Origin: Selaginella moellendorffii
Taxonomy: Eukaryota; Plantae; Lycopodiophyta
Assembly: GCF_000143415.4 (NCBI RefSeq)
Contig: NW_003314349.1
Coordinates: 691,172-755,171 of the forward strand
Direction: 5' to 3'
Length of the DNA stretch: 64,000 bases
This document shows, in pieces, positions 1,060-63,932 of this stretch. The number at the start of each line of letters is the position of its first letter. Position 1 is the first letter of the stretch. The position numbers were made by a program, and so were the translations under genes. The notes under the pieces were generated by a model. That model was not told the origin of the DNA. It saw only the letters and a program-made list of their open reading frames with translations, and searched no databases.

Positions 1060-1745
1060 CCGTCAAGAGAGTTTACTGTATTCCAGGAAAATGCCGGTAA
1101 AAGCAAAGGAAATGATCGATGCCAAAGGTTGCATGTGGGGAGATGGGTAGTAATATCACGTCCATGCCTAATAGTCTTGTTGTTTCCAGGACAAGTTTGG
1201 TCACATAAGACCTGTGGCCATCAACAATGCGAGTGTGGTAGTTGTAGGCGAACAGATTTCATAAAGTGTTCAAGCCAATAGATTTTATATCATTCAAACT
1301 TTCTCACTGATGGCGAGTGTAACTCTTACTTTGCAATCTGCAATCCAATTTTGCATCCTCCACTTGCCTTTGAAGATATAGGATCCAGGTAGCAGCATTC
1401 ACTGCCACAAGAATAGTCATCTGCTCAGTGTTGTTTGGGACAATTCAGGAGCTGAATCTGACACTTGGGGTGTCCAAAACTTTGACACCTCTACAACAAT
1501 TGGCTCAGACACTACTTTTGTCAGCATTCCAAATGTGATTTGGCTTGTAACTGCTTGCAACATAAGATGCATCAAGATTCTCATAGAATCGTGATGCAAC
1601 TTCTTTGCTTAGGAACTTTGCATGTTGGAGCTCCAAGGCCTCCCCAAGCTTGCTACTGATCTCTGGGTGCCATTTCATGAAGCTACTGCTCCACTTTCGG
1701 CTCGGTTTTCTGTCTGTCCAGCTTAGTGCTATAGATGCCTGGAAA
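1060..1745 (-). mobile_element. Pogo/Fot1-like (Tc1/mariner, DDE_1) transposase relic
   Basis: Manual minus-strand translation gives KPSRKWSSSFMKWHPEISSK...VASRFYENL...PNHIWNADKSS...EQMTILVAVNAA...YIFKGK...IVDGHRSYV...HMQPL. These match the WNxDE, IFKG, DGHxSH and QPLD motifs of Pogo-family transposases. Stops and frameshifts are present. Confidence 0.8.
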
Positions 1746-2981
1746 CAACAAGAAGAGAAGTAAGTTGGTTCTCTTTCTTTTATCTTTTACCTTTTCAGAT
1801 TGGCTTTCACTGACAAGAGCTGCCTGACAATTTTTCTGCACAACAGGCTAAAAGTGGTTTAATTAAGACCTCAAAGGACTTATAGTGTACCTCTGGATGC
1901 AATGACGGCCCAGAACGGGATAGAAGTGTTTGCACACAAGCTCTTCAAAGTAAGGTTGTACCTTTTGGACCAGCCAACGAAGTATTGTAAGATTTGCTCC
2001 GTGTAATGTTGTTCTGGCTGAGATTTGCAGTTGATGTAACAGTAAATCTTGTGATCGGATCTAGAAAACATAAAAGAAAGAAATGCTTTCCTTTTTACAA
2101 GAATGTTCTTACCTCAAGATTCTATGCACTTTCCTAGTCCACTCTTGAGACTAGTATATTTTAAGTCTATCCACTACAATTATTTTGTCTCAGAAGTCTC
2201 CTTGTGTTTCTCCTCCATGTTTAATGTAGTATTTAGGTTATGCTCCCACAATTCTTCACGTGGTCAGAGCCTCTCGCATGTGGATCGTTCGCCAAGGGAT
2301 AGCCACATAAAGCGATTCGTTTCTGGAGCTTTATTCCTTTCTTCTGCAACATTGATTTTGCGATGGCGCTTGCCATGTACCATATATCCACAAACAACAC
2401 TACTGCCACCAACTATTGTTGCTTTGCTCAAATCCTTTATAGTGCCCACCGGTTGCAACTCCACCATTTTGTGGAGCACGGAGCAAATCTATTCCCTGCC
2501 TCTGTTTGAAGATCCCGAGCGTGGATTTGCAGGCTCTCCATGCCTTGATGCTTGCAAGCAGACCTTACCAGTTCATGTTTTGTGGCTTCTCTTGCCTTTA
2601 AAACGTTTCCTTTGGTGTAGAAAAGGAGTGGCTTTCATTCAAGGAGCCTGCGGTTTAATCCCCAAAGACTTAGAAAGAAATGTCCAGGACACTGCATTAA
2701 CTTTGACTTATCAAGGTGCGAGCTTCTTCTGAATAGCATGGAACCAAGGTGAAGTTCCAGAGATCCAACCAAGAAAGCTCTTGTCTTAGTAAGCAAAGTG
2801 TGGAAGCGATGGACCAAGGATGAAGGCCTTTCTGAAGCAGAGAAGTGGTTTGCCAAAGTTCAAGCTTAACAATTTTAAGACTGATTCAGCCAACATTTCT
2901 ACAAATAAATGCATCAATTTAGAATGCTCTACTTGATTGCTAGACTTTTGATGGGATGTGTCTAAGGCAGATCCTAGACAT

Positions 2982-4210
2982 TCATTTAATTTCAGAAAAC
3001 TTCATCAAAATAAACCTACAAATCTCTTCAAAAGCCTTCATTGTTGTTTCAGCATGAGATGCAGTTCCTGCTGAAATCTCCACACAACCAATATCTGTCT
3101 TAGTTGGAGGTAATTTAGTGTTGGAGCGACTAAAACACCAATATCCCTTTCTTGATGTTATTTCCTTCTTCTCTGAACTTGATGTTCTCATGATCGTTCC
3201 TAAAGGCATGGAGCTTGAAACCCATTCTTTACAATTTTGTACCACAAACATCCGAGAAGTACAAGAAAGATTCTGTAAAAATAAAATAATATATAAAAAA
3301 GAAAAAAGAACATATGTTTTACCTTCACATATGAGCTTTGTCCAGCATCAGTGAAAGCAATGCATTTGAGACGTTGTAACACCTCTAACTCTGTAAAGTT
3401 CATAATAAATATAAAATATATCAAGTAAATAATTAAACCTCGATATTTTAGAAGCTCATAAGCATCATATCCACCACATGAATGTGCAATAATAGCAAGT
3501 TGTTTAGCTGGAAGTTTTTGACATATATTATCCCATACAGATATAATATGTTCTCTCCGATTCTTAAAGTATGACTCCTATAATAAAAACATTAATAAGT
3601 AAAGGTAGAATAAGAAAACTTAAAATTATATTACCGTTTTTAGAGAGGCATGATTTGGATTCAAAACTAATATTGCAATGTTCCTCTTGTGTGCCCACTC
3701 TAATAAAATATAAAGTTATATCTGACTAAAATACTAATTTTCTTAAAATTTACCAAGAAATGGCAAAACACTCCCAATCTTTAGTGAACCCTGTACCAAA
3801 ATTTAAATTCAGTCTCAAATTGGAAACTTATAAAGAACTTACATTAATACATAGCTTCCGAGCCCATTGCCCTGCACTGATATAAAACAAAACCAGAAAT
3901 TAAATCCCTGTACTAAAATTAATAGAGTTAAAAAACTTACGCTACTTTTCCAGCTCCACAGCCAAGAATAACAAGCTCATTAGCTTCAACAGCATTCTTA
4001 GATAAGAAAACAAAACACTGAAAAAGCACATAAGGTTTTAAAATCTCAAATTGAATCTAACCACTAAAACCTTTTGTGAGGGTAGCTCCACTCTCTCCAT
4101 ACCATACTTCTAGAAATAAAACAGTTAGCACGATTTTTTTTTACTTAACTAGTACCGTTTCCATAAGCTGATGCACAATAATCTCCAGAGCATCGCCTAC
4201 ACACTCATAA
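2982..4210 (-). CDS. FAM172A/ARB2A-like (Arb2 domain, alpha/beta-hydrolase fold) protein; at least 9 exons, 5' end uncertain
   Basis: Exons joined at GT-AG introns stay in phase: HYECVGDALEIIVHQLMET / KYGMERVELPSQK / CFVFLSKNAVEANELVILGCGAGKVA / AGQWARKLCIN / GSLKIGSVLPFL / EWAHKRNIAILVLNPN / HIISVWDNICQKLPAKQLAIIAHSCGG / RLKCIAFTDA / NCKEWVSSSMPLGT...CVEISAGTASHAETT. These are colinear with FAM172A motifs AGQWAR, VLNPN, VWD, AHSxGG, LTD, WVSS and SAGT-H. It lacks 56 nt present in the paralog near the 5' end. Confidence 0.85.
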
Positions 4211-4718
4211 TGAGATTGGCTTACAAACTGAAAACCAGCACCAGTCGCTATATGTCGCAGTTCTAAGCTTTCTTCATCTAATCTATAGCCCAACTCTTCC
4301 AATCTCTCCATCAAAGCAAACCCTAACTAGGTTTTAAAATAACATATACATATATTCCTTTTATCAAGGAAGAGCTCAGAATCACAAGACACTTGCATTG
4401 CATAGAGAATTGGATATATGCCAGTTGTTACTTGTTCTTAGTCTTTGCTTGCCACCATGGCTTCTACCTCAAGCTCTCAAGCTTGTCAAGCAGGAATCTC
4501 CTGATAAGCCTATATGGTCTTGAGAATGAATTTTTCTTTGCGAATGCTCTACTGGATGCGTCCTCGATTGCTTCCAATCTGGTCGTAGTGGCTACTAAGA
4601 GCTTTTGCAAAGCATCGATGCTTTGGAGTGGGCGTGTTTGCAAGAGCCACAGTAGCTTAGCTTGGAATAAAAAGAGCGGGCTTATTTGAAATGCTCTTAC
4701 TCTTAGGTCTAATCGAGA

Positions 4719-6480
4719 ATGCGGGCGATTCATTCGATCGCGGTGGCTGGAGCTCCTGGAGATCGCGGCGGGCGCCGGCAATCTCCTGGCCATGGCGCTG
4801 CCACTGGCGCCGGCGCTGGATCATCGAGGTAAGAATTCTCGCTCCAGTTTCAGGGTTTTCAATCGCGTTTCTTTCGCAGATGGAGAACTCCCAAGAACAA
4901 GAGCGGCTCCAATGCTGGAATTCCGTCGATCTACGACGCGTTGCAGCAGGCGGGAGCGATTCCGGGCGTTGGTGTCGTGCTTGCGGCATTGACAGCGTGT
5001 AGAAACTCGCGAGACCTCCAAACAGGTAAGCGAGTCCATAGCTACGTTGCCGAGCGAACGAATTACTGTTCTTCAAACAGCGTGGTGGCGAACTCTGTGC
5101 TGGATATGTACGCAAAGTGTGGAAGCATGGAGGACGCGTTGCAAGCTTTCTCTGAGATGAAGCATCGGGACGTCGTTTCGTGGACTTCCATGATCTCCGG
5201 ATATGCAAGGTGTGGAGATGGCGCTCTGGCTCTCAAGTTCTTCTTGCGCATGCAAGAAGAAGGCTGTGAGCCGGATCGTGTCACGGTCATCGCAGCAGTG
5301 AAGGCATGCTCTAGCTGCGCAGAGAAGGAAGAAGTTCGCGTGATACTAGGAAGAGCAGTGAAGATCAAATCGCTGGAACAGGGAAGAGCTCTTCATTCTC
5401 GAGTCGCCAGAGCAGGATTTGTCCGGGACCTTGCTGTGGCAAACTCGCTGGTGGATATGTACTCCAAGTGTGGGAGCATGGAAGATGCACAAAAGGTGTT
5501 TGAGAGCATGAGGCAGCGGGACGTGATTTCATGGACTTCGATAATTTCGGGTTATGCACAGGCTGGGGAAGCGGAGTTTGCTCTCGAGCTTTACTCGCGA
5601 ATGCAAGACGAAGGCTGCGCTCCAGATCGTGTGACTCTCCTCGCTGCGCTCAAGGCTTGTGCTAGCTTGGCCGAAGGAGAGAAAGATGGTCCCTCGAGAC
5701 AACAGTGGCTGGAGCAGGGGAGGGCTATTCATTCCAAGGCCGTGGCAAGTGGAAACCAGTCGGCAAACTCTCTACTCGACTTCTACGCGAAGTGTGGGAG
5801 CATGGAAGACGCTTGCACTGTGTTTCAAGCTATGGGTCGTCACAGCTCAATCTCGTGGAAGTGCATGATCCTGGGATATGTCTACAACGGGGAGTTCGAG
5901 CAAGCTCTCGAGTTTTACAAGCGCATGCAACTTTTCTAGCCAGCACGCTCGTCAGCTTCTACGCCAGTGTGGAAACATCCGGGACGCCTGGAAAGTGTTC
6001 CAAAAGGTGCGCCGTCACGACGCGCTGTCCTGGACTCGGGCTCTGCAACTAATGCGACGACGCGTCAACTTTCGTGGCTGCTCTAGCAGCAGCGCGGGAG
6101 CCCTGGAGCAGATATCTCCAGGTGTGGACTCGAGGACGCGAACGTCCTCGTTGATGGCTATGGGAAAACCGGGAACGCAAAGGCACAGCAGGCCTTCAAG
6201 TCACTGGCGAAACCAGACGAGGTTGCCTGGACGTCCGTGATAGCAGCACACAGCCGCGACGCGAAGCTCTTCGGCTTCTTTGCGTGCTCACGGCGTGCAG
6301 CCATACCGGGCTTGTCCGCCAAGCGCAGCGCTGCTCCAATGAGATGGAAGAAAAGTATGGAGTTCGTCCTGCCGAGCACTTGCGTGCCTTCGATCGGCTG
6401 GTTCAAGGGAGGCGAGGGACGAGGCGGGGTACTTGTTGATGGAGGCGATTTACTTGAGGGAGGAGCATGCTCAAATCATT
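4719..6480 (+). pseudogene. Chimeric PLS-PPR pseudogene (PPR-A 5' half fused to decayed PPR-B 3' half)
   Basis: Near-identical to 10425-11649 up to ...YKRMQ. At about 5931 it switches to FLASTLVSFYA..RDAWKVFQKVR, which matches the PPR-B family at 43390-44790. Stop at 5937-5939, followed by many indels. Confidence 0.9.
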
Positions 6481-6880
6481 TGAGAACGCGCTCTTTTTTT
6501 ACAAGCACAATGTACATACCAAAGAATATCCTCTTTCATTTCTACAAGGCGGCAAAATTTGATAAGATGCCGAGAAGATGCTGTTTTGACACGTGGCCGT
6601 GTCCTATTTGCTGCTGGGCGAAGCTTTGAAGCTCGTAGAGCCTGCCGTCCCCTTGGTTGCTAGGTTTATTGCATTCTCTATACGCGCTCTTCGTCTCCAA
6701 CAGCTAGGGCGTCGAAAATCCATCGTCTTTGTGCGCGCCCGGGCCTCGCGCTCTTATAATCCGGCTTCCGGCCGCCAGCAGGTACTGTGATGTGATCGCG
6801 CTCGATCAATCCTGTCTCCGATGTCGAAGCATTTCTAATCTTGCCGCTGCTGGCGCCAATGCAAAGATTTCGAGCGTGCC

Positions 6881-8111
6881 ATGGAGCCTGGCAGTGGAGG
6901 AGACGGAGAAATTCTAGAAATCTCGGCAAAGGTACGCTTGTACGTTATAATCCCTTTGCCGGCAGCGCTGTAGTGGATCTGTTCCACAGAACGATGAGCC
7001 ACGACTAGCCGCGCAACCTCTCGAGGAGTTTCCGGTACAATGCAGATTTCTTTCATCTCGGAATCTGGCAATATTCTTTCACGCAGGGAAATGAGAACCC
7101 AGCGCTCGAGCAACCGGTATGCTTTCAAAGATTCGACTCGATCTTCTCTTTAGTCGTTAAACGTTTCTTCTACTAAATTCTAGGCCCCGCGAGCTCACGG
7201 CAAATTGGTACAAGCGTTGTTCTTGCCAAAGTATGAGTCCGAGCGCTGTGTGTTTTGCAGCAAGGATTGGCGAGTCTATGTTGCTGGGCCTTATCATCTT
7301 TGGTAACCTTGTGTGCTTCTGCGTGCTCTCGACAGTCCAAGGAAAAGGTTCGTTTACAACTTTAGCTTACTTTGCTGATAGAATTGTTTCTATTGCAGAA
7401 TCTGCAGAACGACCAATCTCACCAAGCTGACATTGAGGATGACGACGCGGTTGAACTGGTATCCTGTCCGGATATTTGCCTGCTTAAGCTTTTCCTGCTC
7501 AGGAAATGCAGCCTCGCCGAGGACTCTCCTATATAGTGTCGTGTTCGTTCATCAAGAAACTGATCAGGAACATGGAGTGCAGTGATGTGCGCATCTCGCT
7601 CAAGCGGAATTCTTTCCTCACGGTGCAAAATCGCGAGACATACGCTCCCTACACCCGGTTTAAGGCAGCATATGAAGCGATGGAAAAGGACCATCCCGAT
7701 CTTGGTAAGAGCTCAGTGTTTCTTATGGAATTCTTTTCAATTTGAGCACGACCAGGTAACATCAGTGCTGAATTCGAACCAGCTGACGCCCCAGAGGTGT
7801 TGAAGTTCCTGTGGCACGGCACCCAAACGAAGAACGTTGCCTCGATCATGGAGAGGGGAATGCTCTCAAACCGGGCGAATGCTTACGGGAGGCGTGAGGC
7901 TTACTTCTGGTTCACACCCACTGTCAGATATGCGAGGCTCCACACCAGCAATGACACGAAGGAATACACGATTGTGCTATGTGCTACACTCTCCGCGCAA
8001 AAGCTGGACGAAGATCGTTTCACGGTGGACAGCGAGCGCCCAGATCTCGTGCTTCCCCTAGCGGAGTGGCATCTTCGCCGTGCGGAGCTCCAGCCCGGCC
8101 AAATGCGATAG
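6881..8111 (+). CDS. Stand-alone PARP-like (ARTD) ADP-ribosyltransferase-domain protein, 8 exons, about 290 aa
   Basis: ATG at 6881; seven GT-AG introns give an open frame: MEPGSGGDGEILEISAK / RCSG..EFP / GNENPALEQP / APRAHGKL / QGLASLCCWALSSLVTLCASACSRQSKEK / NLQ..VEL / EMQPRR..YTRFKAAYE..PDLG / NISAE..FLWHGT..IMERGM..NAYGRREAYF..VRYA..IVLC..DRFTV..VLPLAEW. The HGT, YG..YF, YA, LC and FxV..P order is the PARP catalytic fold. Confidence 0.8.
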
Positions 8112-8864
8112 CTAAATACCTATTTCTCAAACGAAACGAATATTCTCTAGCATTTACAATTAGCATTGACTTTTATTGGTCAAAGCCTCTTGCATAGCCA
8201 ATTTTCTCCTGTTTTGCGATGGCGCTTGTCATGTACCATACATCCACAAACAACACTACTGCCACCAGCTATTGTTGCTTTGCTCAAATCCTTATAATGC
8301 CCACTGGTGGTTGCAACTCCGCCACCATTTTGCTCCACAAGATCACACTCTATTCTCTGCCTTTGTCTTGAAGATCCCAAGCGTGGATTTGCAGGCTCTC
8401 CATTCTTTGATGCTTGCGAGCAGGCCTTACCAGTCCATGTTTTAGGCTTTTCTTGCTTTCAGAACGTTTCCTTTGGTGAAGAAGAAGAGTGGCTTTCATT
8501 CAAGGAGGCTGCGGTTTAATTCCCAAAGCCTTAGAAAGAAATGTTCAGGACACTGCATTAACTTTGACTTATCAAGGTGTGAGCTTTTTCTGAATGACAT
8601 GGAACCAAGGTGAAGTTCCAGAATCCAACCAAGAAAGCTCTTGGTCTTAGTAAGCAAAGTGTAGAAGCTTACTTATAGATGGACCAAGGATGAAAGCCTT
8701 TCTGAAGCAGAAAAGTTGTTTGCCAAAGTTGTTACTGACATTCCTCAAGTTTAACAATTTTAAGACTGATTCCAACATTAAAATGCATCAATTTAGAATG
8801 CGATTGTTAAAATTTTAATGGGAGGTTATTTAAGAATGTGTCTGATACAAAGAACTTTATACAT

Positions 8865-10110
8865 TCGTTTAATTTCAGAAAACTTCGTCAAAATACAAAA
8901 GCCTTCATGGTTGTTTCAGCATGAGATCCAGTTCCTGCTGAAATCTCCACACAACCAATATCTGTCTTAATTGGAGGTAATTTAGTGTTGGAGCGACTAA
9001 AACACCAATATCCCTTTCTTGATGTTATTTCCTTCTTCTCTGAACTTGATGTTGTCATGATCGTTCCCAAAGGCACGGAGCTTGAAACCCATTCTTTACA
9101 ATTTTGTACCACAAACATCTGAGAAGTAAAAGAAGATTCTGTAAAAATAAATTAATATATAATATAGAAAATAGAACATATGTTTTACCTTCACATATGA
9201 GCTTTGTCCAGCATCAGTGAAAGCAATGCATTTGAGACGTTGTAGCACCTCTAACTCTGTAAAGTCTAAAATAGACTAAAACCTCGATATTTTAGGAGCT
9301 CGTAAGCATGTGCAATAATAGCAATTTGTTTAGCTGGAAGTTTTTGACATACATATACAGATATAATATGTTGTCTCCATTCTCAAAGTATGACTCCTAT
9401 AATTCAAGCATGAATAAGGTAGAATAAAAAACTTAAAATTATAACCGTTTTTAGAGAGGTATGATTTGGATTCAAACCTAACATTCCTCTTGTGTGCCCA
9501 CTCTAATAAAATATCAAGTTATATCTGATTAAAATACTAATTTTCTTTAAAATTTACCAAGAAATGGCAAAACACTCCCAATCTTTAGTGAACCCTGTAC
9601 TACAAACTTAAATTCAGTCTCAATATAAGGAACTTACATTAATACATAGCTTTCGAGCCCACTGCTCTGCACTGATAATAACAAAACCAGAAATTAAATC
9701 TTTGTACTAAAACTAATTAAGTTAGAAAACTTACGCTACATTTCCAGCTCCACAGCCAAGAATAACAAGCTCGCTAGCTTTAACAGCATTCTTAGATAAG
9801 AAAACAAACCACTGACGGACAAAAGGTTTTAAAAATATAAATTGAATCTAACCACTAGAACCTTTTGTGAGGGTAACTCCATTCTCTCCATACCATACTT
9901 GTAGAAATAAATCAGTTAGCATGTGAAATTTCTACCTAAGTAGTACCGTTTCCATAAGCTAATCTCCAGAGCATCGCCTACACACTCATAATGAGGTTGG
10001 CTTACATCGCAATGGAGCTCGAACAAAACGGACTCTTCATCGATGAGGGGGGATCCCCCGGTAACTGAAAGCCAGCATCAGTCGCTATATGCCGCAGTTC
10101 TAAGCTTTCT
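8865..10110 (-). pseudogene. FAM172A/Arb2-like paralog, disrupted
   Basis: Colinear copy of 2982-4270. Deletions remove the SCGG nucleophile motif (near 9305-9312) and parts of other exons. Confidence 0.85.
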
Positions 10111-10424
10111 TTCTATTAAAATTATATTCCTTTATCCTTTGCTTGCCGTACCTCAAGCTTGTCAAGCAGGATAAGGCTATATGGAAGTCCGTTGACACGG
10201 TCTAAATGAAATTTTCCTTGTGAATGCTCTACTGGATGCGTTCTTGATTGCTTCCAATCCATGGTCGTATTGGCTACTAAGAGCTTTTGCAAAACATCGA
10301 TGCTTTGGAGTGGACGTGTTTTTGCAAGAGCCACAGTAGCTTCGCTGTGCCTGCTAATAACAGGAGCTTGGAATAAAAAGAGCGGGCTTATTTGAAATGC
10401 TCTTACTCTTAGGTCTAATCGAGA

Positions 10425-12731
10425 ATGCGGGCGATTCATTCGATCGCGGCGGCTGGAGCTCCTGGAGATCGCGGCGGGAACCGGAAATCTCCTGGCTATG
10501 GCGCTGCCACTGGCGCCGGCGCTGGATCATCGAGGTAAGAATTCTCGCTCCAGTTTCAGGGTTTTCAATCGCGTTTCTGTCGCAGGTGGAGAACTCCCAA
10601 GAACAAGAGCGGCTCCAATCCTGGAATTCCGTCGATCTACGACGCGTTGCAGCAGGCGGGAGCGATTCCTGGCGTTGGTGTCGTGCTTGCGGCATTGACA
10701 GCGTGTAGAAACTCGCGAGACCTCCAAACAGGTAAGCGAGTCCATAGCTACGTTGCCGAGCGAACGAATTACTGTTCTTCAAACAGCGTGGTGGCGAACT
10801 CTGTGCTGGATATGTACGCAAAGTGTGGAAGCATGGCGGACGCGTTGCAAGCTTTCTCTGAGATGAAGCATCGGGACGTCGTTTCTTGGACTTCCATGAT
10901 CTCGGGATATGCAAGGTGTGGAGATGGCGCTCTGGCTCTTAAGTTCTTCGCGCGCATGCAAGAAGAAGGCTGTGAGCCGGATCGTGTCACGGTCATCGCA
11001 GCAGTGAAGGCATGCTCTAGCTGCGCAGAGAAGGAAGAAGCTCGCGTGATACTAGGAAGAGCAGTGAAGATCACATCGCTGGAACAGGGAAGAGCTCTTC
11101 ATTCTAGAGTCGCCAGAGCAGGATTTGTCCGGGACCTTGCTGTGGCAAACTCGCTGGTGGATATGTACTCCAAGTGTGGGAGCATGGAAGATGCACAAAA
11201 GGTGTTTGAGAGCATGAGGCAGCGGGATGTGATTTCATGGACTTCGATCATTTCGGGTTATGCACAGGCTGGGGAAGCGGAGTTTGCTCTCGAGCTTTAC
11301 TCGCGAATGCAAGACGAAGACTGCGCTCCAGATCGTGTGACTCTCCTCGCTGCGCTCAAGGCTTGTGCTAGCTTGGCGGAAGGAGAGAAAGATGGTCCCT
11401 CGAGACAACAGTGGCTGGAGCAGGGAAGGGCTATTCATTCCAAGGCCGTGGCAAGTGGAAACCAGTCGGATCACTTCGTGGCAAACTCTCTACTCGACTT
11501 CTACGCGAAGTGTGGGAGCATGGAAGACGCTTGCACTGTATTTCAGGCTATGGGTCGTCACAGCTCAATCTCGTGGAAGTGCATGATCCTGGGATATGTC
11601 CACAACGGGGAGTCCGAGCAAGCTCTCGAGTTTTACAAGCGCATGCAATCAACAGGGTGTGTGGCGGATCGTGTGACTTTACTGGCAACTTTGAAAGCTT
11701 GCTCTACCTTGACGGCGGCAGGGGCATCAGAAGAAGCACTGGGAACTGCTGAGAAAGAAAGGCTCGTAAAGTTCAGGCTCAAGTGTCTCGAAACAGGAGC
11801 ACGCATCCATTCTCAAGCTGGAACGCTGGACCTTGCAGTGGCAAACTCTCTAATCGATCTCTACGCGAAGTGCGGTCGCATCATACTTGCTCGCAATCTC
11901 TTCGAAAGCCTTCCACATAAGAACACCGTCTCATGGAACTGTATCATCATCGGGTATGCGGAGTGTGGGGAAGGCGCCGTGTCTTTGGAACTCTACAGAC
12001 AGATGCGTCACACCTCAGGCTGTGCTCCAGATGCCGGTACTTTCGTGGCCGTTTTAAAAGCTTGCTCCAGCTTGGTGGCACTGGAATTCGGGAGGCAAAT
12101 CCAGATGGAAGCTCGCAGTTTTGGACTAGAGAGAGATCCCATCGTCGCAAACGCGCTCGTTAGTTTCTTCACGAAGTGTGGGAGCATGGCCGAGGCCGAA
12201 GAGGTATTTAGTTCCATTTCGAAGAAAGATTTAGTGACATGGAGCTCATTGATCGCAGGCTATAGCTGCCGAGGCGACGCAACTCGGGTGCTGGACCTCT
12301 TCGAGAGAATGGAGAAAGTTGGCGGTGTGAAGCCAGACGGTGTTACGCTCCTCTCCGTCCTCACTGCCTGTAGCCACGCCGGCCTGGTCGACAGAGCGAA
12401 GGACGAATTCAGAGCAATGCCCCGCAAGCATGGGATTGCTCCCACGATTCAACACTACACTTGCATGGTGGAGCTTCTCGGCCGCGCGAATCAACTCGAC
12501 GAGGCAGTGAAATTGGTGAAAGGGATGAGCTGCAAGCCGGATGTTGTGATATGGAAGGCAGTGCTGGGAGCTTGCTGGAAGTGGAAGAACGTGGCGCTCG
12601 GGAGGCTTGCTTTCGAGTCCATCATGGAGCTCGACAATCAAAATGCCCCGGCTTACGTGCTCATGGCCAATCTTTATGCTGAGGCTGGGATGCTGGAAGA
12701 AGCCGCAAGGATGCGCCGAAGCGTAAGTTAA
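10425..12731 (+). CDS. PLS-class pentatricopeptide repeat protein, E subgroup without DYW (PPR-A), 2 exons, about 751 aa
   Basis: Exon 1 is 10425-10534 (MRAIHSIAAAGAPG...). A phase-2 GT-AG intron (10535-10585) joins it in frame to the 694-codon ORF. Repeated NSLVDMYSKCGSMEDA..F..M..DVISWT and PDRVT motifs; C-terminal HYTCMVELLGRA...WKAVLGAC...AYVLMANLYA E domain. Confidence 0.95.
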
Positions 12732-14034: not shown

Positions 14035-14270
14035 GAAGCTAGCAGAAGAACGAAATCTCGGCGCTCGCTGTGACCGTGAATCGATCTTCGTCACCTTTTG
14101 TGTGGAGAGTGTAGCACACGATATATGTGAGGCTTGAAGGAGTAGCTTGACATTCCCTCCAAGCAACGTTCATCGTTTTGGTGCTGTGCCACAGGAACTT
14201 TAACACCCTTGGTGAGTTAGCTGAATTCAGCAATGATGTTATAACCTGGTCATGCTTAAATTGAAAAGAA
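14035..14270 (-). pseudogene. ART last-exon remnant, inverted relative to unit 1
   Basis: VLKFLWHSTKTMNVA...DEDRFTV is homologous to 7760-8070, with an internal deletion and frameshifts. Confidence 0.8.
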
Positions 14271-21700: not shown

Positions 21701-23836
21701 TCAGATTTCCATATAGTCCTCTTCTTTGTAGTCTTCTTCTTCTTCTTCTGTCTGTTCTGCTGGAAATACCAGCATCAACTTCCTAGAAGCTCTCCGATTT
21801 GATCTAATGACAACAGATGCTGTTGCACCCGACCAGCAGACCTGGTAGGCAGCATCATCTGCGCCACTAACTGCCTCGAGGCGCAGCATGTTCAAAACCA
21901 AAGGATTAGAAAACTCCTTGTCTGGCAAAAGCCGCTGCAAATAAAAACTACTCACTGAAACACACTTTATGAATGAATGAATGCTTACCTCGTTCACAAA
22001 AAGCGTCAGCTCTCGTCCAGCTAGTTTACCAGCCGTGCACTGGATAGTCAAAACAGTTTTCTCCACGGAATCACTGCCTTCTTTGGTGCGAACAGCTTCA
22101 ATCCATGCGCCAAAAACGGGAACCCCGTCCATTTCTTCCTCGTACTGGATGCTTCCCTTCCCTGATGAGTAAACTAGATTCAAAAGACCACGCAATTTAG
22201 GAGAGGGAAAAGTACCTTGGCGCATCAATACTCTTGCAAAGTCCGCCTCTTCTCTTTTAATGTCCGCAAACTTGAGTGCTCCAGTATAGACTGCACCGTC
22301 CATTCTTGCACAGACAATGTCGTGTATCTGTTGAAGGGACGGGTAGTCAAGCGTGTCGGGAACAGTATGGTCCATCTTGAGAGCAATGGTCATCTGGAAA
22401 GGCAGGAACGTCCTCTTTTTCATTACCCCTGCTGTCTCCCCTTGCTTGACCTTGGAAATGCTCCTCTGTGTACGTGCTCTCTTTCGTGCCGACCGGCGAG
22501 GAGCCGTTTCATTCGCTGGAGCGTCTTCCGGAGCGTCTTCCACCATGCACAGGCGTTGCGAATGCTTTGCATTGTCACCCTCCATCTTCACTAGAATAGC
22601 GTGCACTCGGTTCGGCTCCGGCACACCTTCCAGGCCCGACGGAATATCAGGGTGCTCGTTTCTGAACGCCATCAAAGAAGAGCACAAGGCATCGTAGTCA
22701 CACTTCTTCATTGGTCTCTGCTTCGTGGCAATAGAGATCTGGAAAAGGACGAGTGGAGGATACACCGAGTCTATCACAGGGAATGACGTGCTACTGGGTT
22801 GTAAGTAGTAGAGGCCAGGTATTTGCAGATCAAGACTGTTACTGGAGAAATACTTCACTTCCCGCTTCTCCAAATGAAGCTTTCTGGTCGGATCGTCAAT
22901 GCTACAAAAGTCACCACCCATCGAGAGTCGATAATGAGCAACACGTTCGAACAGAACTCCAGCTGCACTCCGCAATGAACGGTTCGCTGCCAAAAATAAA
23001 GTGGACGCGATCCAGTTCTTGATCTGACCATTGAAGCATGCGATTGCAAAACAATCCGCTGCCCACTCCGAAGCAAAGGAGAAATGGTCCACGCGGGTGA
23101 AGTCGAGAGTTGGCCAGGAAACGAAGATCTCGTGTGCCTTCAATAATGTCGCGTTCAGCACCCCGCCATCCACAACTTTCTCGACGGCCGTGAGTTTCTC
23201 GCTGAGGACCTTTATCAAAGGCGTGACGTAGTGCCTTATGATTGGCCCGGCAACGTAATACTTCGCCCAGAACTCCATGTATTCGCCTTCATTCTCGGGA
23301 TCTGAAAAATAGACGGCCTGCAACTCGTCGACAGACCAAGGCGGCATGTAAAGCGTCGTGAACTTGCGTTCCTGCATAGTCTTTTCTGCTTGTATCCACT
23401 TATCTTTCTCGGGTGACGCGAACAAGACCGTGGTTCCGTTCCAAGCCCTGTGCCCAACAAATGCCTCATCAGTAAGAAGCCAAACCCCCGGGCGGTTGTA
23501 ATCCGGTGAATCTTCCGCGTCGCAACTCCCATCCTGCTTGAAGACGAAAGCATTCACGGTGATTCCTACGAGGAGCTCTACTATGACGGCCGTCTCTCCA
23601 TCGTCGAGGAGCCTCCTGAGAACGTACCACAGAAAACACGACTTGCCGATTCCGGGGTCCCCCGAGATGTGGATGTAGCGCTTGCCCACGCTCGCGAGCT
23701 CCCTGATGTCGGTGTAGACGTCGCTATAGCACTCACGAATCCACACTCTATCCTTGTTGGACATAGCAGGGGTATTGAACCAGCTCCCCACCTCCATTGT
23801 CGCCGCCATCGGGACCAAGTCGCGGCCCAGGACCAT
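21701..23836 (-). CDS. Crinkler/RHS-type (CR) protein: P-loop NTPase, PD-(D/E)xK-fold nuclease and unknown C-terminal region
   Basis: 711-codon ORF. NTPase motifs: IRECY, Walker A GDPGIGKSCFLWY, Walker B WLLTDE, VLFASP, YMPPWSVDEL, GPIIR, FASEW. Nuclease motifs: AGVLFERVAH...YYLQPSSTSFPVIDSV..LVLFQISIA. Basic patch PRRSARKRAR. Probable in-frame 54-nt intron at 21935-21988. Confidence 0.88.
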   Translation of the reverse strand: MVLGRDLVPMAATMEVGSWFNTPAMSNKDRVWIRECYSDVYTDIRELASVGKRYIHISGDPGIGKSCFLWYVLRRLLDDGETAVIVELLVGITVNAFVFKQDGSCDAEDSPDYNRPGVWLLTDEAFVGHRAWNGTTVLFASPEKDKWIQAEKTMQERKFTTLYMPPWSVDELQAVYFSDPENEGEYMEFWAKYYVAGPIIRHYVTPLIKVLSEKLTAVEKVVDGGVLNATLLKAHEIFVSWPTLDFTRVDHFSFASEWAADCFAIACFNGQIKNWIASTLFLAANRSLRSAAGVLFERVAHYRLSMGGDFCSIDDPTRKLHLEKREVKYFSSNSLDLQIPGLYYLQPSSTSFPVIDSVYPPLVLFQISIATKQRPMKKCDYDALCSSLMAFRNEHPDIPSGLEGVPEPNRVHAILVKMEGDNAKHSQRLCMVEDAPEDAPANETAPRRSARKRARTQRSISKVKQGETAGVMKKRTFLPFQMTIALKMDHTVPDTLDYPSLQQIHDIVCARMDGAVYTGALKFADIKREEADFARVLMRQGTFPSPKLRGLLNLVYSSGKGSIQYEEEMDGVPVFGAWIEAVRTKEGSDSVEKTVLTIQCTAGKLAGRELTLFVNEVSIHSFIKCVSVSSFYLQRLLPDKEFSNPLVLNMLRLEAVSGADDAAYQVCWSGATASVVIRSNRRASRKLMLVFPAEQTEEEEEDYKEEDYMEI

Positions 23837-45530: not shown

Positions 45531-47599
45531 CTTTATATAAGAATTTTCCTAAGCTGGAATTATAATTCACGTCCATAATCGGGGATAAATCTTCACTAGT
45601 TATAATAATAATTAATTTTAGTAATTATTGGTTAACCTATAGGGAAATATAGATATTTAAGTATGTTCTACCATCTATCTGTTGTTATTCATTCAGATTA
45701 ATCTTATATTTATCATTTATAACCATTTTTATTAATTAATTAAATAATTAATTTTATTTTGAAACTTTTTTATAATTTATAAACTTTCCTAAACACTTCC
45801 TAGTATATTCTAGTTTATTTTACCATCTAATCATTAATATTCAATAATATTAATCTTGTTTTTATAATTATAAACTTCCATTTGATTAATTGGGTTAATA
45901 AATAGGAATAAAACTACTATTAAGCAAACTAAGCATTGCTACATGCAAAGCATAATTGATAACTGAACAATATCTATAGCACAGTCATATCTATGTGATT
46001 GATTAAACAGAATTACCTTTAGTTAATTTATACTAGTAAGAAGAGGCAAACATAAACTAGACTTCACTTTGAAGAATTGAAAACAAAAAAGAATAAAACT
46101 TTGAGCTAAAATTTAAAATCCATCAACTTGCCAAATAAGCCAAGTATACAAACCCATTTCGTAAGCCAAGTAAAAGTTAATTACATCTTAGACCTTCACT
46201 CTGTCTTTGAGAATATCCAGCACAATATCGTCTCTACTACAAGGGATGGAATAGTGCACCCTATTGAGATGAAATACAGCTGTCTACAAAAGGTGATGGT
46301 GTGTGGCTAACAAAATCCATTTAGCCTTATCTCCCAAAACATCTCCAAAGACTCCTTGCTCCTTCCATTCTGAGCATAGCAAGAGAGGATCAAGTTCCAT
46401 GATACAATATCATGATGGTTTTATCCATGAACCTTGGAACACTAATATGGAGTCTCCACACTGGCCATACATGGAGATTAATGTGTTCTTGCTTGCTGGT
46501 GTCTCCCATGATCTAAGAGACTTGGCTTGTCATACCAGCACAAGCATCAATCATTGATAGTAGCTGAGATCATTGAGCTTGATACCATGAGTCTGGAAAC
46601 TTTGAGAGCTCCTTTGCAATTCCTGAGAAGCACTAACTTCTCTTACCAAGATTGGGATGATCCTGCAACATTGATTCATATGCAAACCAGGTGCATTTGC
46701 ACCGTGAAGAAAGGATTCCTTTTGAGCAAGACATGCACATCATGTTGTTCTGGAAAAATGAGAAAAGACACAATGTACAGAACTTAGAGGCATTTCCTGA
46801 GCTGGAAATGAAGGAGACGAACTAAGAAAATAACATACCAAATCAAATGTGTTAGCTTCATGAGCTTTTGTTTTGTAGAGTTTGCAAATTTTGTATCAGC
46901 AACATAAGCTAAAGATTGTACCAGAGATGATAAAGCAACATAGACTCGGCATTACCAAGAACAACACTTAACTATATCTTGAAAATTAGATATACTGAAG
47001 TATTTAATTCATAACCTATTGAAAATACCTCAATCCTTGTTTATTTCAATGGAAGCAAGCAATGGATAAAGAAAACATGTCTATCATTCATTTGTATGCA
47101 CATTTTCTATAAAGTGGTTCTTCCAATTTCAATTATAACTCTTAGGAGTTGATGGGTCAATAAGACAAAACTCAACTCTAATGGTTTTATCAACTGTCAT
47201 AAAGTTTAACCCATTGTACAAGGCTACAAAAAAACAACATGGTATAGATTATCTTAAGACATACTCTTCAATGGTGAAGATGATAAGTGTTAAACTTTTG
47301 TTTACTTTTGCTATTTGAGATTTATCACATTGATATCAAGTCTACTCTCCTAAATAGAAATTTGCAAGAAGATCTATATTTAATAGCCAAAAGACTATAC
47401 TTAATCTATATATCTTGTGGAAGTTAAAAAAAAGTTCTTTATAACTTTAAATAAACCTTTAAAGTATTGTGGTAGAAAATTAATACTTTTTTCAAAGCTG
47501 AAGGATTTTCTTACACTCCTAAATCCAATATTTATATCAAGTGATAAGGGAACAATTTATTTATTATTGCTCTCTACTATGATAAGTCATTTTGTATTA

Positions 47600-49980: not shown

Positions 49981-51390
49981 CTTAATCTTGGGTTTACACT
50001 TAGTTTTGGGTTTGAAGTTTAGAGTATGATAACCAAGAAAATGGAAGTTTAGGGTTTAGGGTAAAAAGTTAAACTAATTGCTTTTGAATTTTTTGTTTGC
50101 TTAAACAAATTTTTAAGAGAGTAAATATATTTTAATATGCTTGGATATTCTGGAATATTTTACAATCTAGTAGTTGTTATTCATTTAGATTAATCTTATA
50201 TTTGTAATTTATAAAATTTTACTTTATACCATCTAATGATTGATATGTGGTAAGATTAATCTTGTATTTATAAATTATACACTTTCAACTTAAACATGAT
50301 CATATTTTTAAAATAAGTTTTTCTAAATGGTGCTCAAACACTGTAAAGAGTATAGTTGGACTGTAAACACTTATAATATGGTTGATTTCAAGAAGTTATA
50401 TTGTTATTTAAAGAGATCGAACTACATGTTTACTTAAATAGTTCATTATGGAGTATAATACGAAATCACTAGTTAAATATAAACTTGGAATTCTCAACAA
50501 AATTTATTTTTGGCATATAATTATTGTGAATGTATAATAAAAATGTGGTTTATCTTTTATGCCCATAATACTCATTCAGCTTCATATAAACTTTTCTCCT
50601 TTGCAAAAATTTGAGAATTTTTTTAATGAACTATACATTGAGCAACTTGATAAACAAGAATAACACTATTATTACATACACTGTTTGGCTGTCAAATTAA
50701 AGTAAAAGTATTATTAAGTATTGTCAAATTTGTAATTAAATTTCCAAACCGTCCAGCTCTTATAAAACTTGTCAATTCCTTGCAAGCTGAAAAGAGTAAG
50801 TGCTACCTCCAGCCAAGAATGGTCATCACATTCCATAAGCATTGGTCCTGATTGGCAAACTCTAGTTGTCACGATCTTCATCTCCGACATCTTGCAATCT
50901 TTGCTGCATGCGAATGCTGGATTTTTAACTTGGTTCCAAGCCATTCGGAAAAAGCTTGCACTTTGATAAATCAAACTTGATATTTCTTTTTAAGGCTTTG
51001 CGTGATGGAATAGCAAAAGAAAAAGACCCAAATTGACAAACCAACCTTGGCACAAGAATGATCTTGCTCCATGGCCCGACCTCGTCCCGTTCCATCGCAT
51101 TTCTCTCAGGTCCCTAGCTCGGCCAGAGTCGAGACGAAAAGAGGAAATTAATTATTACTCCTGAATAAGCAAGCCCGAGAAAGAGCCGTTGACTTACATT
51201 GACTTTTATTGGTCAAAGAATCGTTGTCGAGATCCGCGATTCGTTAGTAAAGCTTTCTTCTGCAACAGTGATTTTTTTATGGCGCTTGTTCGCGGAAATC
51301 CGGTGAAGTAGCGAGGAAAAGAAAATTCTTTCTGGGCTATCGGTCTTGTCTTTTTTTCTTTGTGTATCTTCTTTCTAATGTTTTCTCCCG

Positions 51391-52652
51391 CTAGCACATT
51401 TGGCCGGGCTGGAGCTCTTGGCGACGAAGATGCCACTCCGCTAGCGGAAGAACGAGATATGGGCGCTCGCTGTCCACCGTGAAACGATCATCGTCCACCT
51501 TATGCGCGAAGAGTGTAGCACACAGCACAAGTGTGTAGTCCTTGGAGTCATTGCTAGCGGGAGCCTCGCATAACTGGGCGTGGGTGTGAACCAGAAGTAA
51601 GTCTCAGGCCTCCCGTAAGCATTAGCCCAGCTTGACTGCATTCCGTTCGCCATGATCGAAGCAACGTTCCTCGTTTCGGTCCCGTGCCACAGGAACTTCA
51701 ACATTGCTGGGGCGTCAGCTGGTTCGAATTCGTCACTGATGTTACCTGGTGATCATGCTCAAGCTGAAAAGAATTCCATAAGAAACAGTGAGTTCTTACC
51801 AAGATCGGGACGATACATTCGCAACCATTCATATGCTTCCGCAAACCGGGTGTAGGGAGCGTATGTCCCGCGATTTTGCACCGTGAGGAAAGGATTCCGC
51901 TTGAGCGAGATGGGCACATCGGTGCACTCCGTGTTGTTGACCAGTTTCTGGATAAACGAGCATGACACGATGTAGGGTAGCCCTCGGAGAGGCTGCATAT
52001 CCTGAGCACGATTTCAAAGCTCAAATGCAAAGATCCGGACCAGGAAAATAGCATACCAATTCAAGTGCGTCGTCGTCATCCTCAATGTCAGCTTGGTGAG
52101 CTTGGTCGTCTTGGAGATTCTGCATTAGAAAGCAGGAGATTCTGCTTTCTATCAGCAAAGCAAGCTAAAGCTGTGAACGAACCTTTTCCTTGGACTGACG
52201 AGAGCACGCAGAAGCACAGAGGGCTACCAGAGATGATGAGGCCCAGCAACATAGACTCGCCAGTCCTTGCTATAAAACACATATCGCTCGGACTCATATT
52301 TTGGCAAGAACAACGCTTGTACCAATTTGCTGTGAGCTCGCGGGGCCTGGAATTTAGCACAAGAAACTTTTAACGACTTTTAAAAAGAAGATCGAGTCAA
52401 AGCATACCGGTTGCTCGAGCGCCGGGTTCTCATTTCCCTGCATGAAAGAATATTGCCAGATTTCGAGATAAGTCCTAGGAAAGAAATCTGCATTGTACCG
52501 GAAACTCCTCGAGAGGTTGCGCGGCTAGTCGTGGCTCATCGTTCTGAGGAACAGATGCACTATAGCGCTGCCGGCAAAGGGATTATAACATCGCACCGTA
52601 CCTTTGCCGAGATTTCTAGAATTTCTTCGTCTCCTCCACTGCCAGGCTCCAT
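51391..52652 (-). pseudogene. ART paralog with a 1-nt frameshift after the YF..YA motifs
   Basis: LWHGTETRNVASIMANGMQSSWANAYGRPETYFWFTPTPSYARL, then GAGGCTCC-CGCTAG (versus GAGGCTCCACGCTAG in the 38.6-kb copy) shifts the frame. Confidence 0.82.
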
Positions 52653-53027
52653 CGCACGCTCGAAATCTTTGCATTGGCGCCAGCAGCAGAAACATTAGAA
52701 ATGCTTGACATCGGAGAAAGGATCGATCGAGCGCGATCACTTGCCTGCTGGCGGTCGGAAGCAGGATTATAAGAGCGCGAGGCTCGGGCGCGCATGGATT
52801 TCGAGCTGTTGGAGGCGAAGATGCGATAACCTAGCAAGCAACGGGCTCTTCTTCCCTCTACGAGCTTAAACCTTCACAGCCTCGCCAAACAGCAAATAGA
52901 AGACGACCACGTGTCAAAATAGCATATTCTGGCATCTTTTCAAAATTTCTCCCGGCTTCTTATTTTTCTCTTTAATAGTTGCCATATATAACAAACCGAA
53001 AGCGCATTTCTTCTGCAAGCTCTTAAA

Positions 53028-55772: not shown

Positions 55773-57263
55773 TGGAAACTTTGAGAGCTCCCTTGCAATT
55801 CATGAGAAGCACTAACTTCTCTTACCAAGATTGGGATGATCCTTTCACATTGATTCATATGCAAACCAGGTGCATTTGCACTGTGAAGAAAGGATTCCTT
55901 TTGAGCAAGACATGCACATCGTGTTGTTCTGGAAAAATGAGAAAAGACACAATGTACAGATGACTCAGAGGACAGGAGCGAGTGGTCTGGATTGAAACCA
56001 ATCCGACGGCTACCAAAATCCCACTACGCTAATATTAGTATACGGCATCGTAGCCATACACTTGACCCTCACACTATAAAAATTATTAAATATTTATTTC
56101 AAAATTTGTATAAAGGTTATGATTGTGCCATAATTGAAATCCATTCAGTAACATAACAACCTAAATTGGGATGAAATTTCATCTTTTTTAAATACATGTT
56201 ATATATCTACTCTAGAGGTGATCTAGAGACTTTCTAAATTTAAAATGCATGGTCATTCAACCCTTTTAATCCGACTCCTATCCATCTTCTAAAATTTTAA
56301 AATGTCTATTTTATAAAAGGTTCTAAACAAATAACACTTCAAAAAGCTACTCAAAATGGTATAATATTGATAAAATAATTGAACTAAATATAAATGACCT
56401 AAATGCTAGACAATATCCATTTCCTAAAATAACTAACAATATACCATCCTGTCCTTTATATCAGGTATGGAGGACACCACCTCTGCCGCCACCCTTCAAG
56501 CTGTAAAGCTCCTCCTCTACTTCTTGGTAAGTTGCTCTAGATTTTGAATTAAGTCAAAGTGTTCTAGTCAAACTGTTAGTTGGGAATGTAAACATTTTTT
56601 GTGCATTTATATTATACATTTAACTTTACACTTATTGGCAAATTTGACATACAAGAAATGTTATTCCCCAAATGTATTCTATGTCACTATCCAATGTTAA
56701 ATTATGTCACTTATATATAATTTTCCTCCATAAAAGAGGTGTTACATCTTATAACAACTTTGTAAGCAACCAAAGAGAACTGTAAGAGACTAATGTTTCC
56801 ATTATATTTTAGCCACTTAATCACACTTTTGACTATTTAGAGAAGTCTCACTCATAACCTCCATAAGTTTTATTCCTGCATTGGGGACATGCTATCCTCT
56901 TGAATGGCATCTATGCCATTTAACCTTTGCACTTGGTCTAAGTGCTTTATGTGTTCAATCCCATAAATAACATCTAAAGGTACCACTGACATATCGGACT
57001 GTTACACTAAATACATGTTCATTCACCCTTGTCACGTCGATAATACAAAACCATTTGCATCATAATCCCGTCTCTTAAAGACTGGGCCATCTCTCTATGA
57101 CTGGTCATCCTTTGACCACATTTTAGCACCTTTATGATGCCCAAAAATATGGGAAACACCCTTATCCAATGTCTTTTATTCCATTCCCACTAAGTCCCTT
57201 TCTATCCACGGCCGTGCTTACCAACACTACCACCAAGTTAAGGCCCAAAGGCCCGACCACTAA

Positions 57264-63371: not shown

Positions 63372-63932
63372 CTAACAAAGTGTATTTGAATCCCAAACTT
63401 TTCTTTTTACTGATTTAGTGCTAAATGTCCTTTGATATGAGAAATATAAAACTAAATTACAATTATTTTGTAATTCTAAGTGTGAATTTTCATAGCAATT
63501 ATAATACTTACAATAAGTACCAGAAGCCCAAATACTTTTTTTATTAGAAGAATATAAAACTAAATTTCCATCTTCTTGTAATCTTAATACACAATTATTG
63601 CCTTTATTTGTTATTTTTGCAAACCATAAACTTATATTTTTAGTATATAATATTAGAGTACAATCACTACTTAAGTATAAATATGCTTTATGATTTAAAG
63701 AAACTAGGAAATATGCTGATAATAAATGCTGGTTTGGCATATTAGTATACCCACTTATTAACATATTTATTAAAATGTTACACCTAAAATTTCTCATTGC
63801 AAGTATTTGATGACTACGAGGTGTATAGTTTCTAATGTAATAAAATATAACAAAATGTTCAGTAGTTATAGTTATAGAAGAAGCAGCAAAATTTATGAAA
63901 TCATTATAGGATTGTTCTAAAATATTTGTCAA
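63372..63932 (-). CDS. Bulb-type (GNA-related) mannose-binding lectin domain protein
   Basis: Three beta-prism II subdomains: LSSDCTLILY..LW, LQEDGNLVLY..IWASGT (canonical QxDxNxVxY) and LQNNCNLVLY..VWDSNT. The start codon is uncertain. Confidence 0.85.
   Translation of the reverse strand: MTNILEQSYNDFINFAASSITITTEHFVIFYYIRNYTPRSHQILAMRNFRCNILINMLISGYTNMPNQHLLSAYFLVSLNHKAYLYLSSDCTLILYTKNISLWFAKITNKGNNCVLRLQEDGNLVLYSSNKKSIWASGTYCKYYNCYENSHLELQNNCNLVLYFSYQRTFSTKSVKRKVWDSNTLC

Follow-up and report, generated by a model that had tools for sequence, protein, structure and literature searches.

A candidate species-restricted gene with a compact, diverged PARP-type domain in Selaginella moellendorffii

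Introduction

Proteins with the PARP catalytic domain (Pfam PF00644) share a triad made up of an NAD-binding His in a strand-H-G-S/T-helix motif, an NAD-stacking Tyr in a G-x-G-x-Y-F motif and a third position where the fifth strand begins, which is Glu in the polymerases and I, L, Y, T or V in the mono-ADP-ribosyltransferases (mono-ARTs). Human PARP10/14-type mono-ARTs carry H-Y-I/L, and the membrane-anchored PARP16 carries H-Y-Y. In PARPs the Tyr lies 32-34 residues past the His, and the third residue follows after 57-68 residues in human mono-ARTs and after 92-94 in PARP1 and AtPARP1 (PMC2848248, Table 2). The plant SROs typically lose His and/or Tyr (PMC2848248), and a further group, the ADP-ribosyltransferase (ART)-associated Crinkler-like proteins AACRN(L), has been described from animals and fungi as mono-ARTs of the H-Y-Y type (PMC12957317, 2026). 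Here we analyze a stretch of 64,000 nucleotides (nt) of the Selaginella moellendorffii genome (assembly GCF_000143415.4, contig NW_003314349.1, positions 691,172 to 755,171 of the forward strand), hereafter the window. At positions ~6571-8111 of its plus strand it contains a gene, copy A, that probably encodes a very short and highly diverged PARP-type ADP-ribosyltransferase-like domain.

Our reading of this locus, which we hold to be somewhat better than an even bet, is that copy A is a real, species-restricted gene with a compact, diverged PARP-type domain, an activity that is predicted at most, and three inefficiently spliced introns. It would be the sole intact member of a small S. moellendorffii gene family. 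The last two exons are predicted to provide a compact domain of ~180 amino acids (aa) derived from the H-Y-type ART fold of the PARP/diphtheria-toxin clade. This domain appears to keep the NAD+-binding motifs, namely the His-Gly-Thr strand-helix and the Tyr-Phe motif. A canonical catalytic Glu context is not recognisable, and the last strands would follow the Tyr motif 20-50 residues sooner than they do in known PARPs. Six short 5' exons of a fully spliced mRNA would extend the domain by an acidic tail and by a Cys-rich hydrophobic segment that is conserved. Such a protein may bind NAD+; it could at best be a mono-ART and might be a non-catalytic derivative, with a surface that evolves fast around conserved motifs. 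The locus had been proposed, from its letters and open reading frames (ORFs), to hold a hidden eight-exon stand-alone ART with a non-canonical triad outside the known plant families. The observation behind this original prediction is partly confirmed and its interpretation partly supported.

A diverged PARP-type domain

Similarity to ARTs is concentrated in exon 8 (7756-8111). The PF00644 profile matches residues 4-40 of this exon at profile positions 38-76 of 199 (E 7e-5, 22.8 bits) and scores 21.3-21.8 bits on the spliced domain of exons 7 and 8. The stretch around the His motif also draws the Tpt1/KptA profile of Pfam (E 0.26, 11.7 bits against a cut-off of 26), and Tpt1 gives the sole matches in NCBIfam (E 0.013, 15.4 bits against a cut-off of 239). 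When a profile of the gene copies was compared to the PDB, 33 of the 35 matches at E 0.5-3 were to PARP1, PARP3 or Tpt1, at LLWHGS..N.A.I...G. Protein-language-model neighbours in Atlas give a similar picture: 67 of the 100 neighbours of exon 8 are PF00644 clusters (score 0.93). For exons 7 and 8 together the best neighbour is a 152-aa PARP-only cluster (0.95), which shares 160 of 256 features; PF00644 is carried by 61 of the 100 neighbours. The rise of the score from 0.93 to 0.95 on adding exon 7 supports the exon 7/8 junction. PARP-only proteins of 150-190 aa are among the neighbours, and SRO clusters appear as distant ones (0.84). A PARP/ART-type His motif in the 3' exons, as originally proposed, is thus borne out by profile, structure-database and language-model comparisons. 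We consider it likely that the domain descends from an H-Y-type ART; that the fold is intact is less certain.

Several results speak against this assignment. The PF00644 match stays under the gathering threshold (22.8 against 26.7 bits) and spans only ~37 residues, and alignable similarity to PARPs ends at ~35 residues. A single-sequence phmmer search of the PDB returned no PARP match. AlphaFold2 applied to the spliced domain (residues 563-737 of the RefSeq model XP_024519991.1, here P0001) reached a predicted local distance difference test score (pLDDT) of 35.8 from the single sequence and 38.1 with an eight-row paralogue alignment, so that the ART fold, a split beta-sheet sandwich, is putative here. 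Foldseek with this low-pLDDT model, a comparison that carries no information, found no match in the PDB at E <= 0.001, and a PARP14 chain at rank 14 (E 1.0) is noise.

The first triad residue can be placed by tool. The His motif FLWHGTQTKNVASIMERGM, in which His is exon-8 residue 20, was aligned by HMMER to LLWHGSRTTNFAGILSQGL of PARP1 and is invariant in copy A, its counterpart H on the other haplotype, and the paralogues B and C. It shares with PARPs the strand-His-Gly-Ser/Thr-helix motif, aligned to LLWHGS of PARP1. The Tyr, exon-8 residue 49 (AYF in AYGRREAYF), was assigned by pattern beyond the reach of the tool alignments; at 29 residues past the His it lies slightly closer than the 32-34 residues of PARPs (PMC2848248, Table 2). 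Copies A, H and C have kept this motif, which copy B has lost by deletion. All motifs listed in the original prediction, WHGT, AYG..AYF, VRYA, IVLC, DRFTV and VLPL, are found in exon 8.

For the third residue the original prediction proposed a replacement of Glu by Arg. A hand alignment to what we take to be the PARP1-like pattern, 'NEYIVY', gives R87 of DRFTV. A second one, to a pattern presumably typical of mono-ARTs, 'DS.V.....P.(I/L)FV', gives L97 of PDLVL and thereby H-Y-L as in PARP14; we treat both as leads only. The Arg thus fits one hand alignment, but R87, L97 and E103 (in AEWH) are equally possible. The corresponding distances from the Tyr are 38, 48 and 54 residues, to be compared with the 57-68 and 92-94 given above, which suggests a domain that is unusually compact or truncated. 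FLWHGT, NVASIM and DRFTVDSERP..LVLPLAEWH are invariant among the copies and the residues in between vary, as would be expected if the core is conserved and the surface evolves quickly. The protein ends ~11 residues past the last conserved block (LVLPLAEWH). If it is made and binds NAD+, few of the known PARP-type domains would be smaller than its own.

The domain differs from PARPs in general by its score below the Pfam cut-off, by a Tyr-to-third-residue distance of 38-54, by its occurrence in one species only, and by the lack of a PARP_reg, WGR, WWE, macro or zinc-finger partner. With mono-ARTs it has in common that the catalytic Glu context is not recognisable. PARP16 offers an analogy as a small protein with one hydrophobic segment, whereas the hydrophobic segment here lies N-terminal to the domain and is not a C-terminal tail anchor. 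This segment, LASLCCWALSSLVTLCASAC in exon 5 (7261-7347), is indeed Cys-rich, as had been noticed before; its Kyte-Doolittle maximum over 19 residues is 1.74, borderline for a membrane helix. Membrane anchoring and S-acylation, which the original prediction raised, are speculative, as are membrane association in general, catalysis and mono-ART activity. In contrast to plant PARP1-3, in which WGR and the helical PARP_reg precede the catalytic domain, neither of the two was detected by Pfam. SRO/RCD1 proteins resemble our candidate in being plant proteins with a PARP-like domain and a degenerate triad, and SRO clusters are among its Atlas neighbours (0.84). They differ in that their C-terminal RST and, where present, N-terminal WWE were not detected here and that both His and Tyr are kept in our candidate. 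An exhaustive phmmer search of 1.84 billion proteins detected no similarity to any SRO. Tpt1/KptA resemble it through weak matches on the same His-motif region; these scores are far under the cut-offs (15 against 239 bits) and cover ~30 residues only. The earlier claim of a protein free of WGR, PARP_reg, WWE and RST held in the regions scanned: Pfam found none at E <= 10 in the spliced domain and in a 246-aa piece of P0001 with exons 2 and 5, a scan that left out exons 1, 3, 4 and 6. PADLOC returned nothing. If an NAD+-binding protein is indeed made, the gene would provide a plant ART outside PARP1-3 and SRO. It could then help to define the minimal ART fold and be useful for studying plant ADP-ribosylation beyond DNA repair.

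Gene structure and transcription

Unspliced, positions 6881-8111 contain only short open stretches in the three forward frames. Joining eight segments across seven GT..AG introns of 44-67 nt yields a frame of 855 nt, encoding 284 aa, close to the ~290 aa of the original prediction; short introns fit S. moellendorffii. RNA contigs of run X1 that are 100% identical to the window show four GT..AG junctions, namely introns 1, 3 and 5 and an 85-nt intron in the 5' untranslated region (5'UTR; 6782-6866) that had been missed before. Contig 1 covers 6571-6779 and is joined to 6865-6931 (joint 6779>6865, cut +2), which defines a 5' untranslated exon at 6571-6781. The true 5' end lies at or upstream of 6571. 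This exon holds an in-frame stop, so that a stop precedes ATG 6881 in the spliced mRNA.

Exon 1 (6867-6931) is coding from ATG 6881 and contributes 17 acidic codons. The protein indeed starts with an acidic N-terminus, with 10 D/E against 4 K/R in residues 1-50. Intron 1 (6932-6989, 58 nt) is confirmed by RNA, being spliced in X1 contig 3 and unspliced in contig 2. It is followed by exon 2 (6990-7034), whose 15 codons are identical in copy C and show 4 changes in copy B, and by the proposed intron 2 (7035-7086, 52 nt). Two micro-exons flank intron 3 (7117-7183, 67 nt), which is again RNA-confirmed (joint 7115>7183, cut +1). It sets the 3' boundary of the 30-nt exon 3 (7087-7116) and the 5' boundary of the 24-nt exon 4 (7184-7207); the 3' boundary of the latter is putative. 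Between the proposed intron 4 (7208-7260, 53 nt) and the RNA-confirmed intron 5 (7348-7398, 51 nt; joint 7345>7397, cut +2) lies exon 5, which has 7 differences to copy C, 2 of them protein-changing. Exon 6 (7399-7458) is an acidic linker with in-frame indels of 9 and 3 nt in copies B and C. After the proposed intron 6 (7459-7502, 44 nt), exon 7 (7503-7704) provides the N-terminal half of the PARP-like domain and contains ATG 7506. The proposed intron 7 (7705-7755, 51 nt) lies outside the RNA contigs. Its GT/AG is kept in all copies, it is used by the RefSeq models, and unless it is spliced, stops in this region close both flanking frames. Exon 8 carries FLWHGT and AYGRREAYF, followed by the block DRFTVDSERP..LVLPLAEWH, which is invariant, and it includes the stop codon.

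Further RNA data support transcription of a multi-intron gene. A contig from run X2 over 6565-7199 is wholly unspliced. Its differences from the window, namely 5 substitutions, one deletion of 1 nt and one insertion of 9 nt, mark it as a third allele, a further paralogue or contaminating genomic DNA. Its insertion, CTAGGACTT, is also found in intron 2 of copies B and C. A second X2 contig covers 7900-8059 in exon 8. RNA-labelled runs from several studies contain 7-43% of the sampled words, exons 7-8 included, which indicates that the locus is transcribed at a low level. Word depth in the contigs is ~3-12, so expression is low and patchy. Runs X5 and X7 contain more of exons 7-8; of the raw-read runs, X15 yielded 0 reads and X16 yielded 2.

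RNA also reaches upstream of 6571, towards the stop codon of a PPR gene at 6483. This extension would suit a quite different gene model, in which the ART exons are part of a PPR-ART(-PPR) fusion, as in the RefSeq proteins XP_024517979.1 (1500 aa) and XP_024519991.1 (1488 aa), which join PPR, ART and PPR. Yet the PPR frame is frameshifted and ends in a stop, and an in-frame stop stands ahead of ATG 6881 in the spliced RNA. Moreover, exon 6867-6931, which RNA confirms, is absent from the models, and these read across the 5'UTR. The 6781/6867 RNA junction together with the in-frame stop disfavours the RefSeq path. We therefore rejected the fusion for its conflict with RNA junctions and stop codons and regard it as scarcely credible. 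The stand-alone nature of the gene, as first proposed, holds. That it was hidden is true in part: exons 2, 5, 7 and 8 sit in the two chimeric models. Chimeric PPR-ART-PPR models of this kind can hide a small gene.

Coding constraint and intron retention

An open spliced frame is easily obtained by chance. In a threading control across 622 nt, with a maximum of six GT..AG introns, each 44-67 nt long, an open frame could be threaded through 49 of 200 other stretches of the window and 97 of 200 shuffled sequences. Being threadable in 25-49% of control sequences, the open frame alone is not evidence, and we rejected it as such.

The pattern of substitutions is more informative. We compared copies A, B and C with H from locus L001, which is 97% identical to and collinear with window positions 1665-8822 and is thus taken as the other haplotype or assembly. 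All seven GT/AG pairs, that is, 14 splice dinucleotides, are conserved in the four copies, including those of introns 2 and 4. Across exons 1-6 the 284-aa frame has 13 synonymous and 13 nonsynonymous differences, its second codon position is the least variable, and the ratio of nonsynonymous to synonymous substitution rates (dN/dS) is 0.25-0.31. The two shifted frames give 8:18 and 5:21 synonymous to nonsynonymous differences. The 90-aa ORF at 7040-7430 of the intron-retaining isoform gives 2:24 and was rejected as coding. The frame has stayed free of stops in all four copies through 88-94 substitutions; random substitution would give this outcome with a probability of ~0.03. In-frame indels in exons carry little weight, since indels in the proposed introns are often multiples of three too. 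On balance, these comparisons indicate that the 284-aa frame has been a coding frame in the history of the family.

Splicing of this frame in copy A appears incomplete, which counts against it. The 576-nt X1 contig 4, the one transcript contig to span the 5' half, with junctions 3 and 5, is composed of contiguous blocks at 6988-7115, 7183-7345 and 7397-7681 and runs unspliced across introns 2, 4 and 6. Retention of any of the three brings a stop into the 284-aa frame, and in this isoform the ORF from ATG 6881 ends after 51 codons. The seven-intron model therefore stands for introns 1, 3 and 5, whereas 2, 4 and 6 were found unspliced in this contig. In B and C, intron 2 is longer than in A and H by 9 nt and intron 6 by 11-15 nt, and the shorter forms may be spliced less well. 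We favour the view that introns 2, 4 and 6 are removed inefficiently or under regulation, which would make much of the transcript pool non-productive.

The same isoform leaves a second frame open, provided that intron 7 is spliced: from ATG 7506 the PARP-like frame gives a 184-aa ORF. Translation of this ORF only, as a bare ART-like domain behind a multi-intron 5' leader, would agree with the PARP-only Atlas neighbours of 150-190 aa. However, the start codon would then follow a leader of ~670 nt in which several other ATGs, and ORFs of 51 and 90 aa, come first. It would also leave the coding constraint on exons 1-6, and the frame kept open there in B and C, without a role. We consider it improbable.

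Family turnover and species restriction

In the window this gene is present in three full copies, besides at least five relics. B and C are 81-83% identical to A over exons and introns. Paralogue B (38640-40140, minus strand; 81% nt identity) has in-frame deletions of 9, 12 and 51 nt only, the last of which takes out the Tyr motif. Without a stop and with its frame kept (38644-38943, minus strand), it may still encode a protein lacking this motif rather than be a dead gene. Paralogue C (51390-52948, minus strand; 83% nt identity) carries a 1-nt deletion opposite 7942 that shifts the frame in exon 8. Searches of the window by tblastn and blastn added a decayed exon-8 relic at 14038-14270 and relics with stops at ~36750-36876, 42895-43120, 46546-46984 and 55797-55929, all on the minus strand. 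The relics match copy A, and not B or C, in the AYE.M.KDHP.LG block, so the older state seems to survive in copy A. An E-class PPR gene stands immediately upstream of each of the copies A, B and C, and also of the relic at 43.0 kb.

Beyond this species the family leaves no trace in the collections searched. With exon 8 as query, exhaustive phmmer yielded two real matches among 1.84 billion representative proteins, both RefSeq models of S. moellendorffii. P0001, located on scaffold GL377673.1 of GCA_000143415.2 (locus L001), and its cluster mate P0007 (XP_024517979.1) are the PPR-ART-PPR chimeras described above, and P0002 is a PPR protein fused to a frameshifted ART exon. P0003-P0005 were rejected as homologues, being repeat artefacts. 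A collection of 5.8 billion clusters, searched with the 175-aa domain and the exon-8 alignment at E <= 10, contained no stand-alone protein of 64-306 aa with the domain, and scans of metagenome and viral contigs found no relatives. Full-text searches of the literature on PARP catalytic domains in Selaginella and on similar topics retrieved no description of this family. The lineage-specific distribution suggested earlier is thus supported, and an orphan domain is plausible but unproven. Birth, amplification and decay of a family within one species would make this a compact case of gene turnover.

The same turnover lends weight to a less favourable reading, in which the locus is a transcribed, decaying relic: copy A is merely not yet disabled, its transcripts are mostly non-productive, and no functional protein is made. 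Every copy except A is damaged, with lesions in B and C and stops in the relics, and the adjoining PPR gene is itself frameshifted. Domain dN/dS is 0.88 between A and B, 0.57 between A and C and 0.28 between B and C; the values of 0.57-0.88 that involve A are compatible with relaxed constraint. Exons 7-8 have diverged by 13-16%, compared with 4-14% for the introns, and other organisms offer no orthologue that would show long-term conservation. Retention of introns 2, 4 and 6 in X1, the unspliced X2 contig, the low and patchy expression, the absence of relatives outside the species and the inability of AlphaFold to fold the domain fit this picture as well. On the other side, neither haplotype has a lesion in the 284-codon frame or in the 14 splice dinucleotides. 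Synonymous changes are in excess in the 284-aa frame, stops are missing where neutrality would give a probability of ~0.03, and A has kept the state of the old relics from which B and C diverged. We therefore consider a decaying relic rather unlikely, if the most serious competitor to a real, species-restricted gene with a compact PARP-type domain.

Genomic neighbourhood

The PPR gene directly upstream of copy A (4941-6483, plus strand) has at least 2 frame changes in the last 300 nt before its stop at 6483 and is for this reason probably a pseudogene. On both sides of copy A lie tandem duplicates, Arb2-like at 2356-4341 and 8212-10006 and PPR at 4434-5930 and 10152-11648, with 83-93% identity (through locus L001), so that the ART sits in a repeated Arb2-like/PPR/ART unit.

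At a distance of 14 kb, an intact 711-aa ORF (21704-23836, minus strand) is Crinkler/RHS-like by Atlas (0.98, 233 of 256 shared features), with neighbours from Basidiomycota, Chytridiomycota, Oomycota and Euglenozoa; Pfam gave it no match at E <= 0.01. Its presence raises the idea that copy A is no derivative of a housekeeping PARP and instead a toxin-type ART from the Crinkler/RHS (CR) effector world, in an island of selfish or conflict genes. In Atlas, some neighbours of the ART are unnamed clusters with recorded members chiefly from Cnidaria and Rotifera; another is a Chordata cluster that carries the PARP, Exotox-A_cataly and ART-PolyVal families. From those phyla AACRN(L) with an H-Y-Y NAD-binding motif have been reported (PMC12957317), and an H..Y..Y pattern is present here. 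By description the two may further share a mono-ART domain of H-Y-Y type, a family that amplifies and decays locally, and free-living eukaryotic hosts, with a CR-type gene in the window. The likeness is one of description and a lead only. AACRN(L) have an N-terminal Ubl header, sometimes degenerate, joined to a diphtheria-toxin-like ART, and are not reported from plants; no Ubl or Crinkler header was detected upstream in our gene. The link to the CR gene is proximity within 64 kb; the genes that directly adjoin the copies are PPR genes, not CR genes. We hold a toxin-type origin to be very unlikely. A bolder composite deserves hardly more credit: an ultra-compact, membrane-tethered H-Y-(R/L) mono-ART, born within this lineage of land plants, that has a domain smaller by 20-50 residues than every characterised PARP, is of the toxin type linked to Crinkler/RHS conflict genes, was amplified together with PPR genes, and is held in check by regulated intron retention. 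The plainer view of a diverged, species-restricted gene with a PARP-type domain remains the one we prefer.

Over the whole window (1-64000), PPR-ART spacers included, ARAGORN found no tRNA and Rfam no family at gathering thresholds. Near its end, an ORF at 63375-63932 (minus strand) matches Pfam B_lectin (E 7e-12), the bulb-type lectin domain that binds D-mannose.

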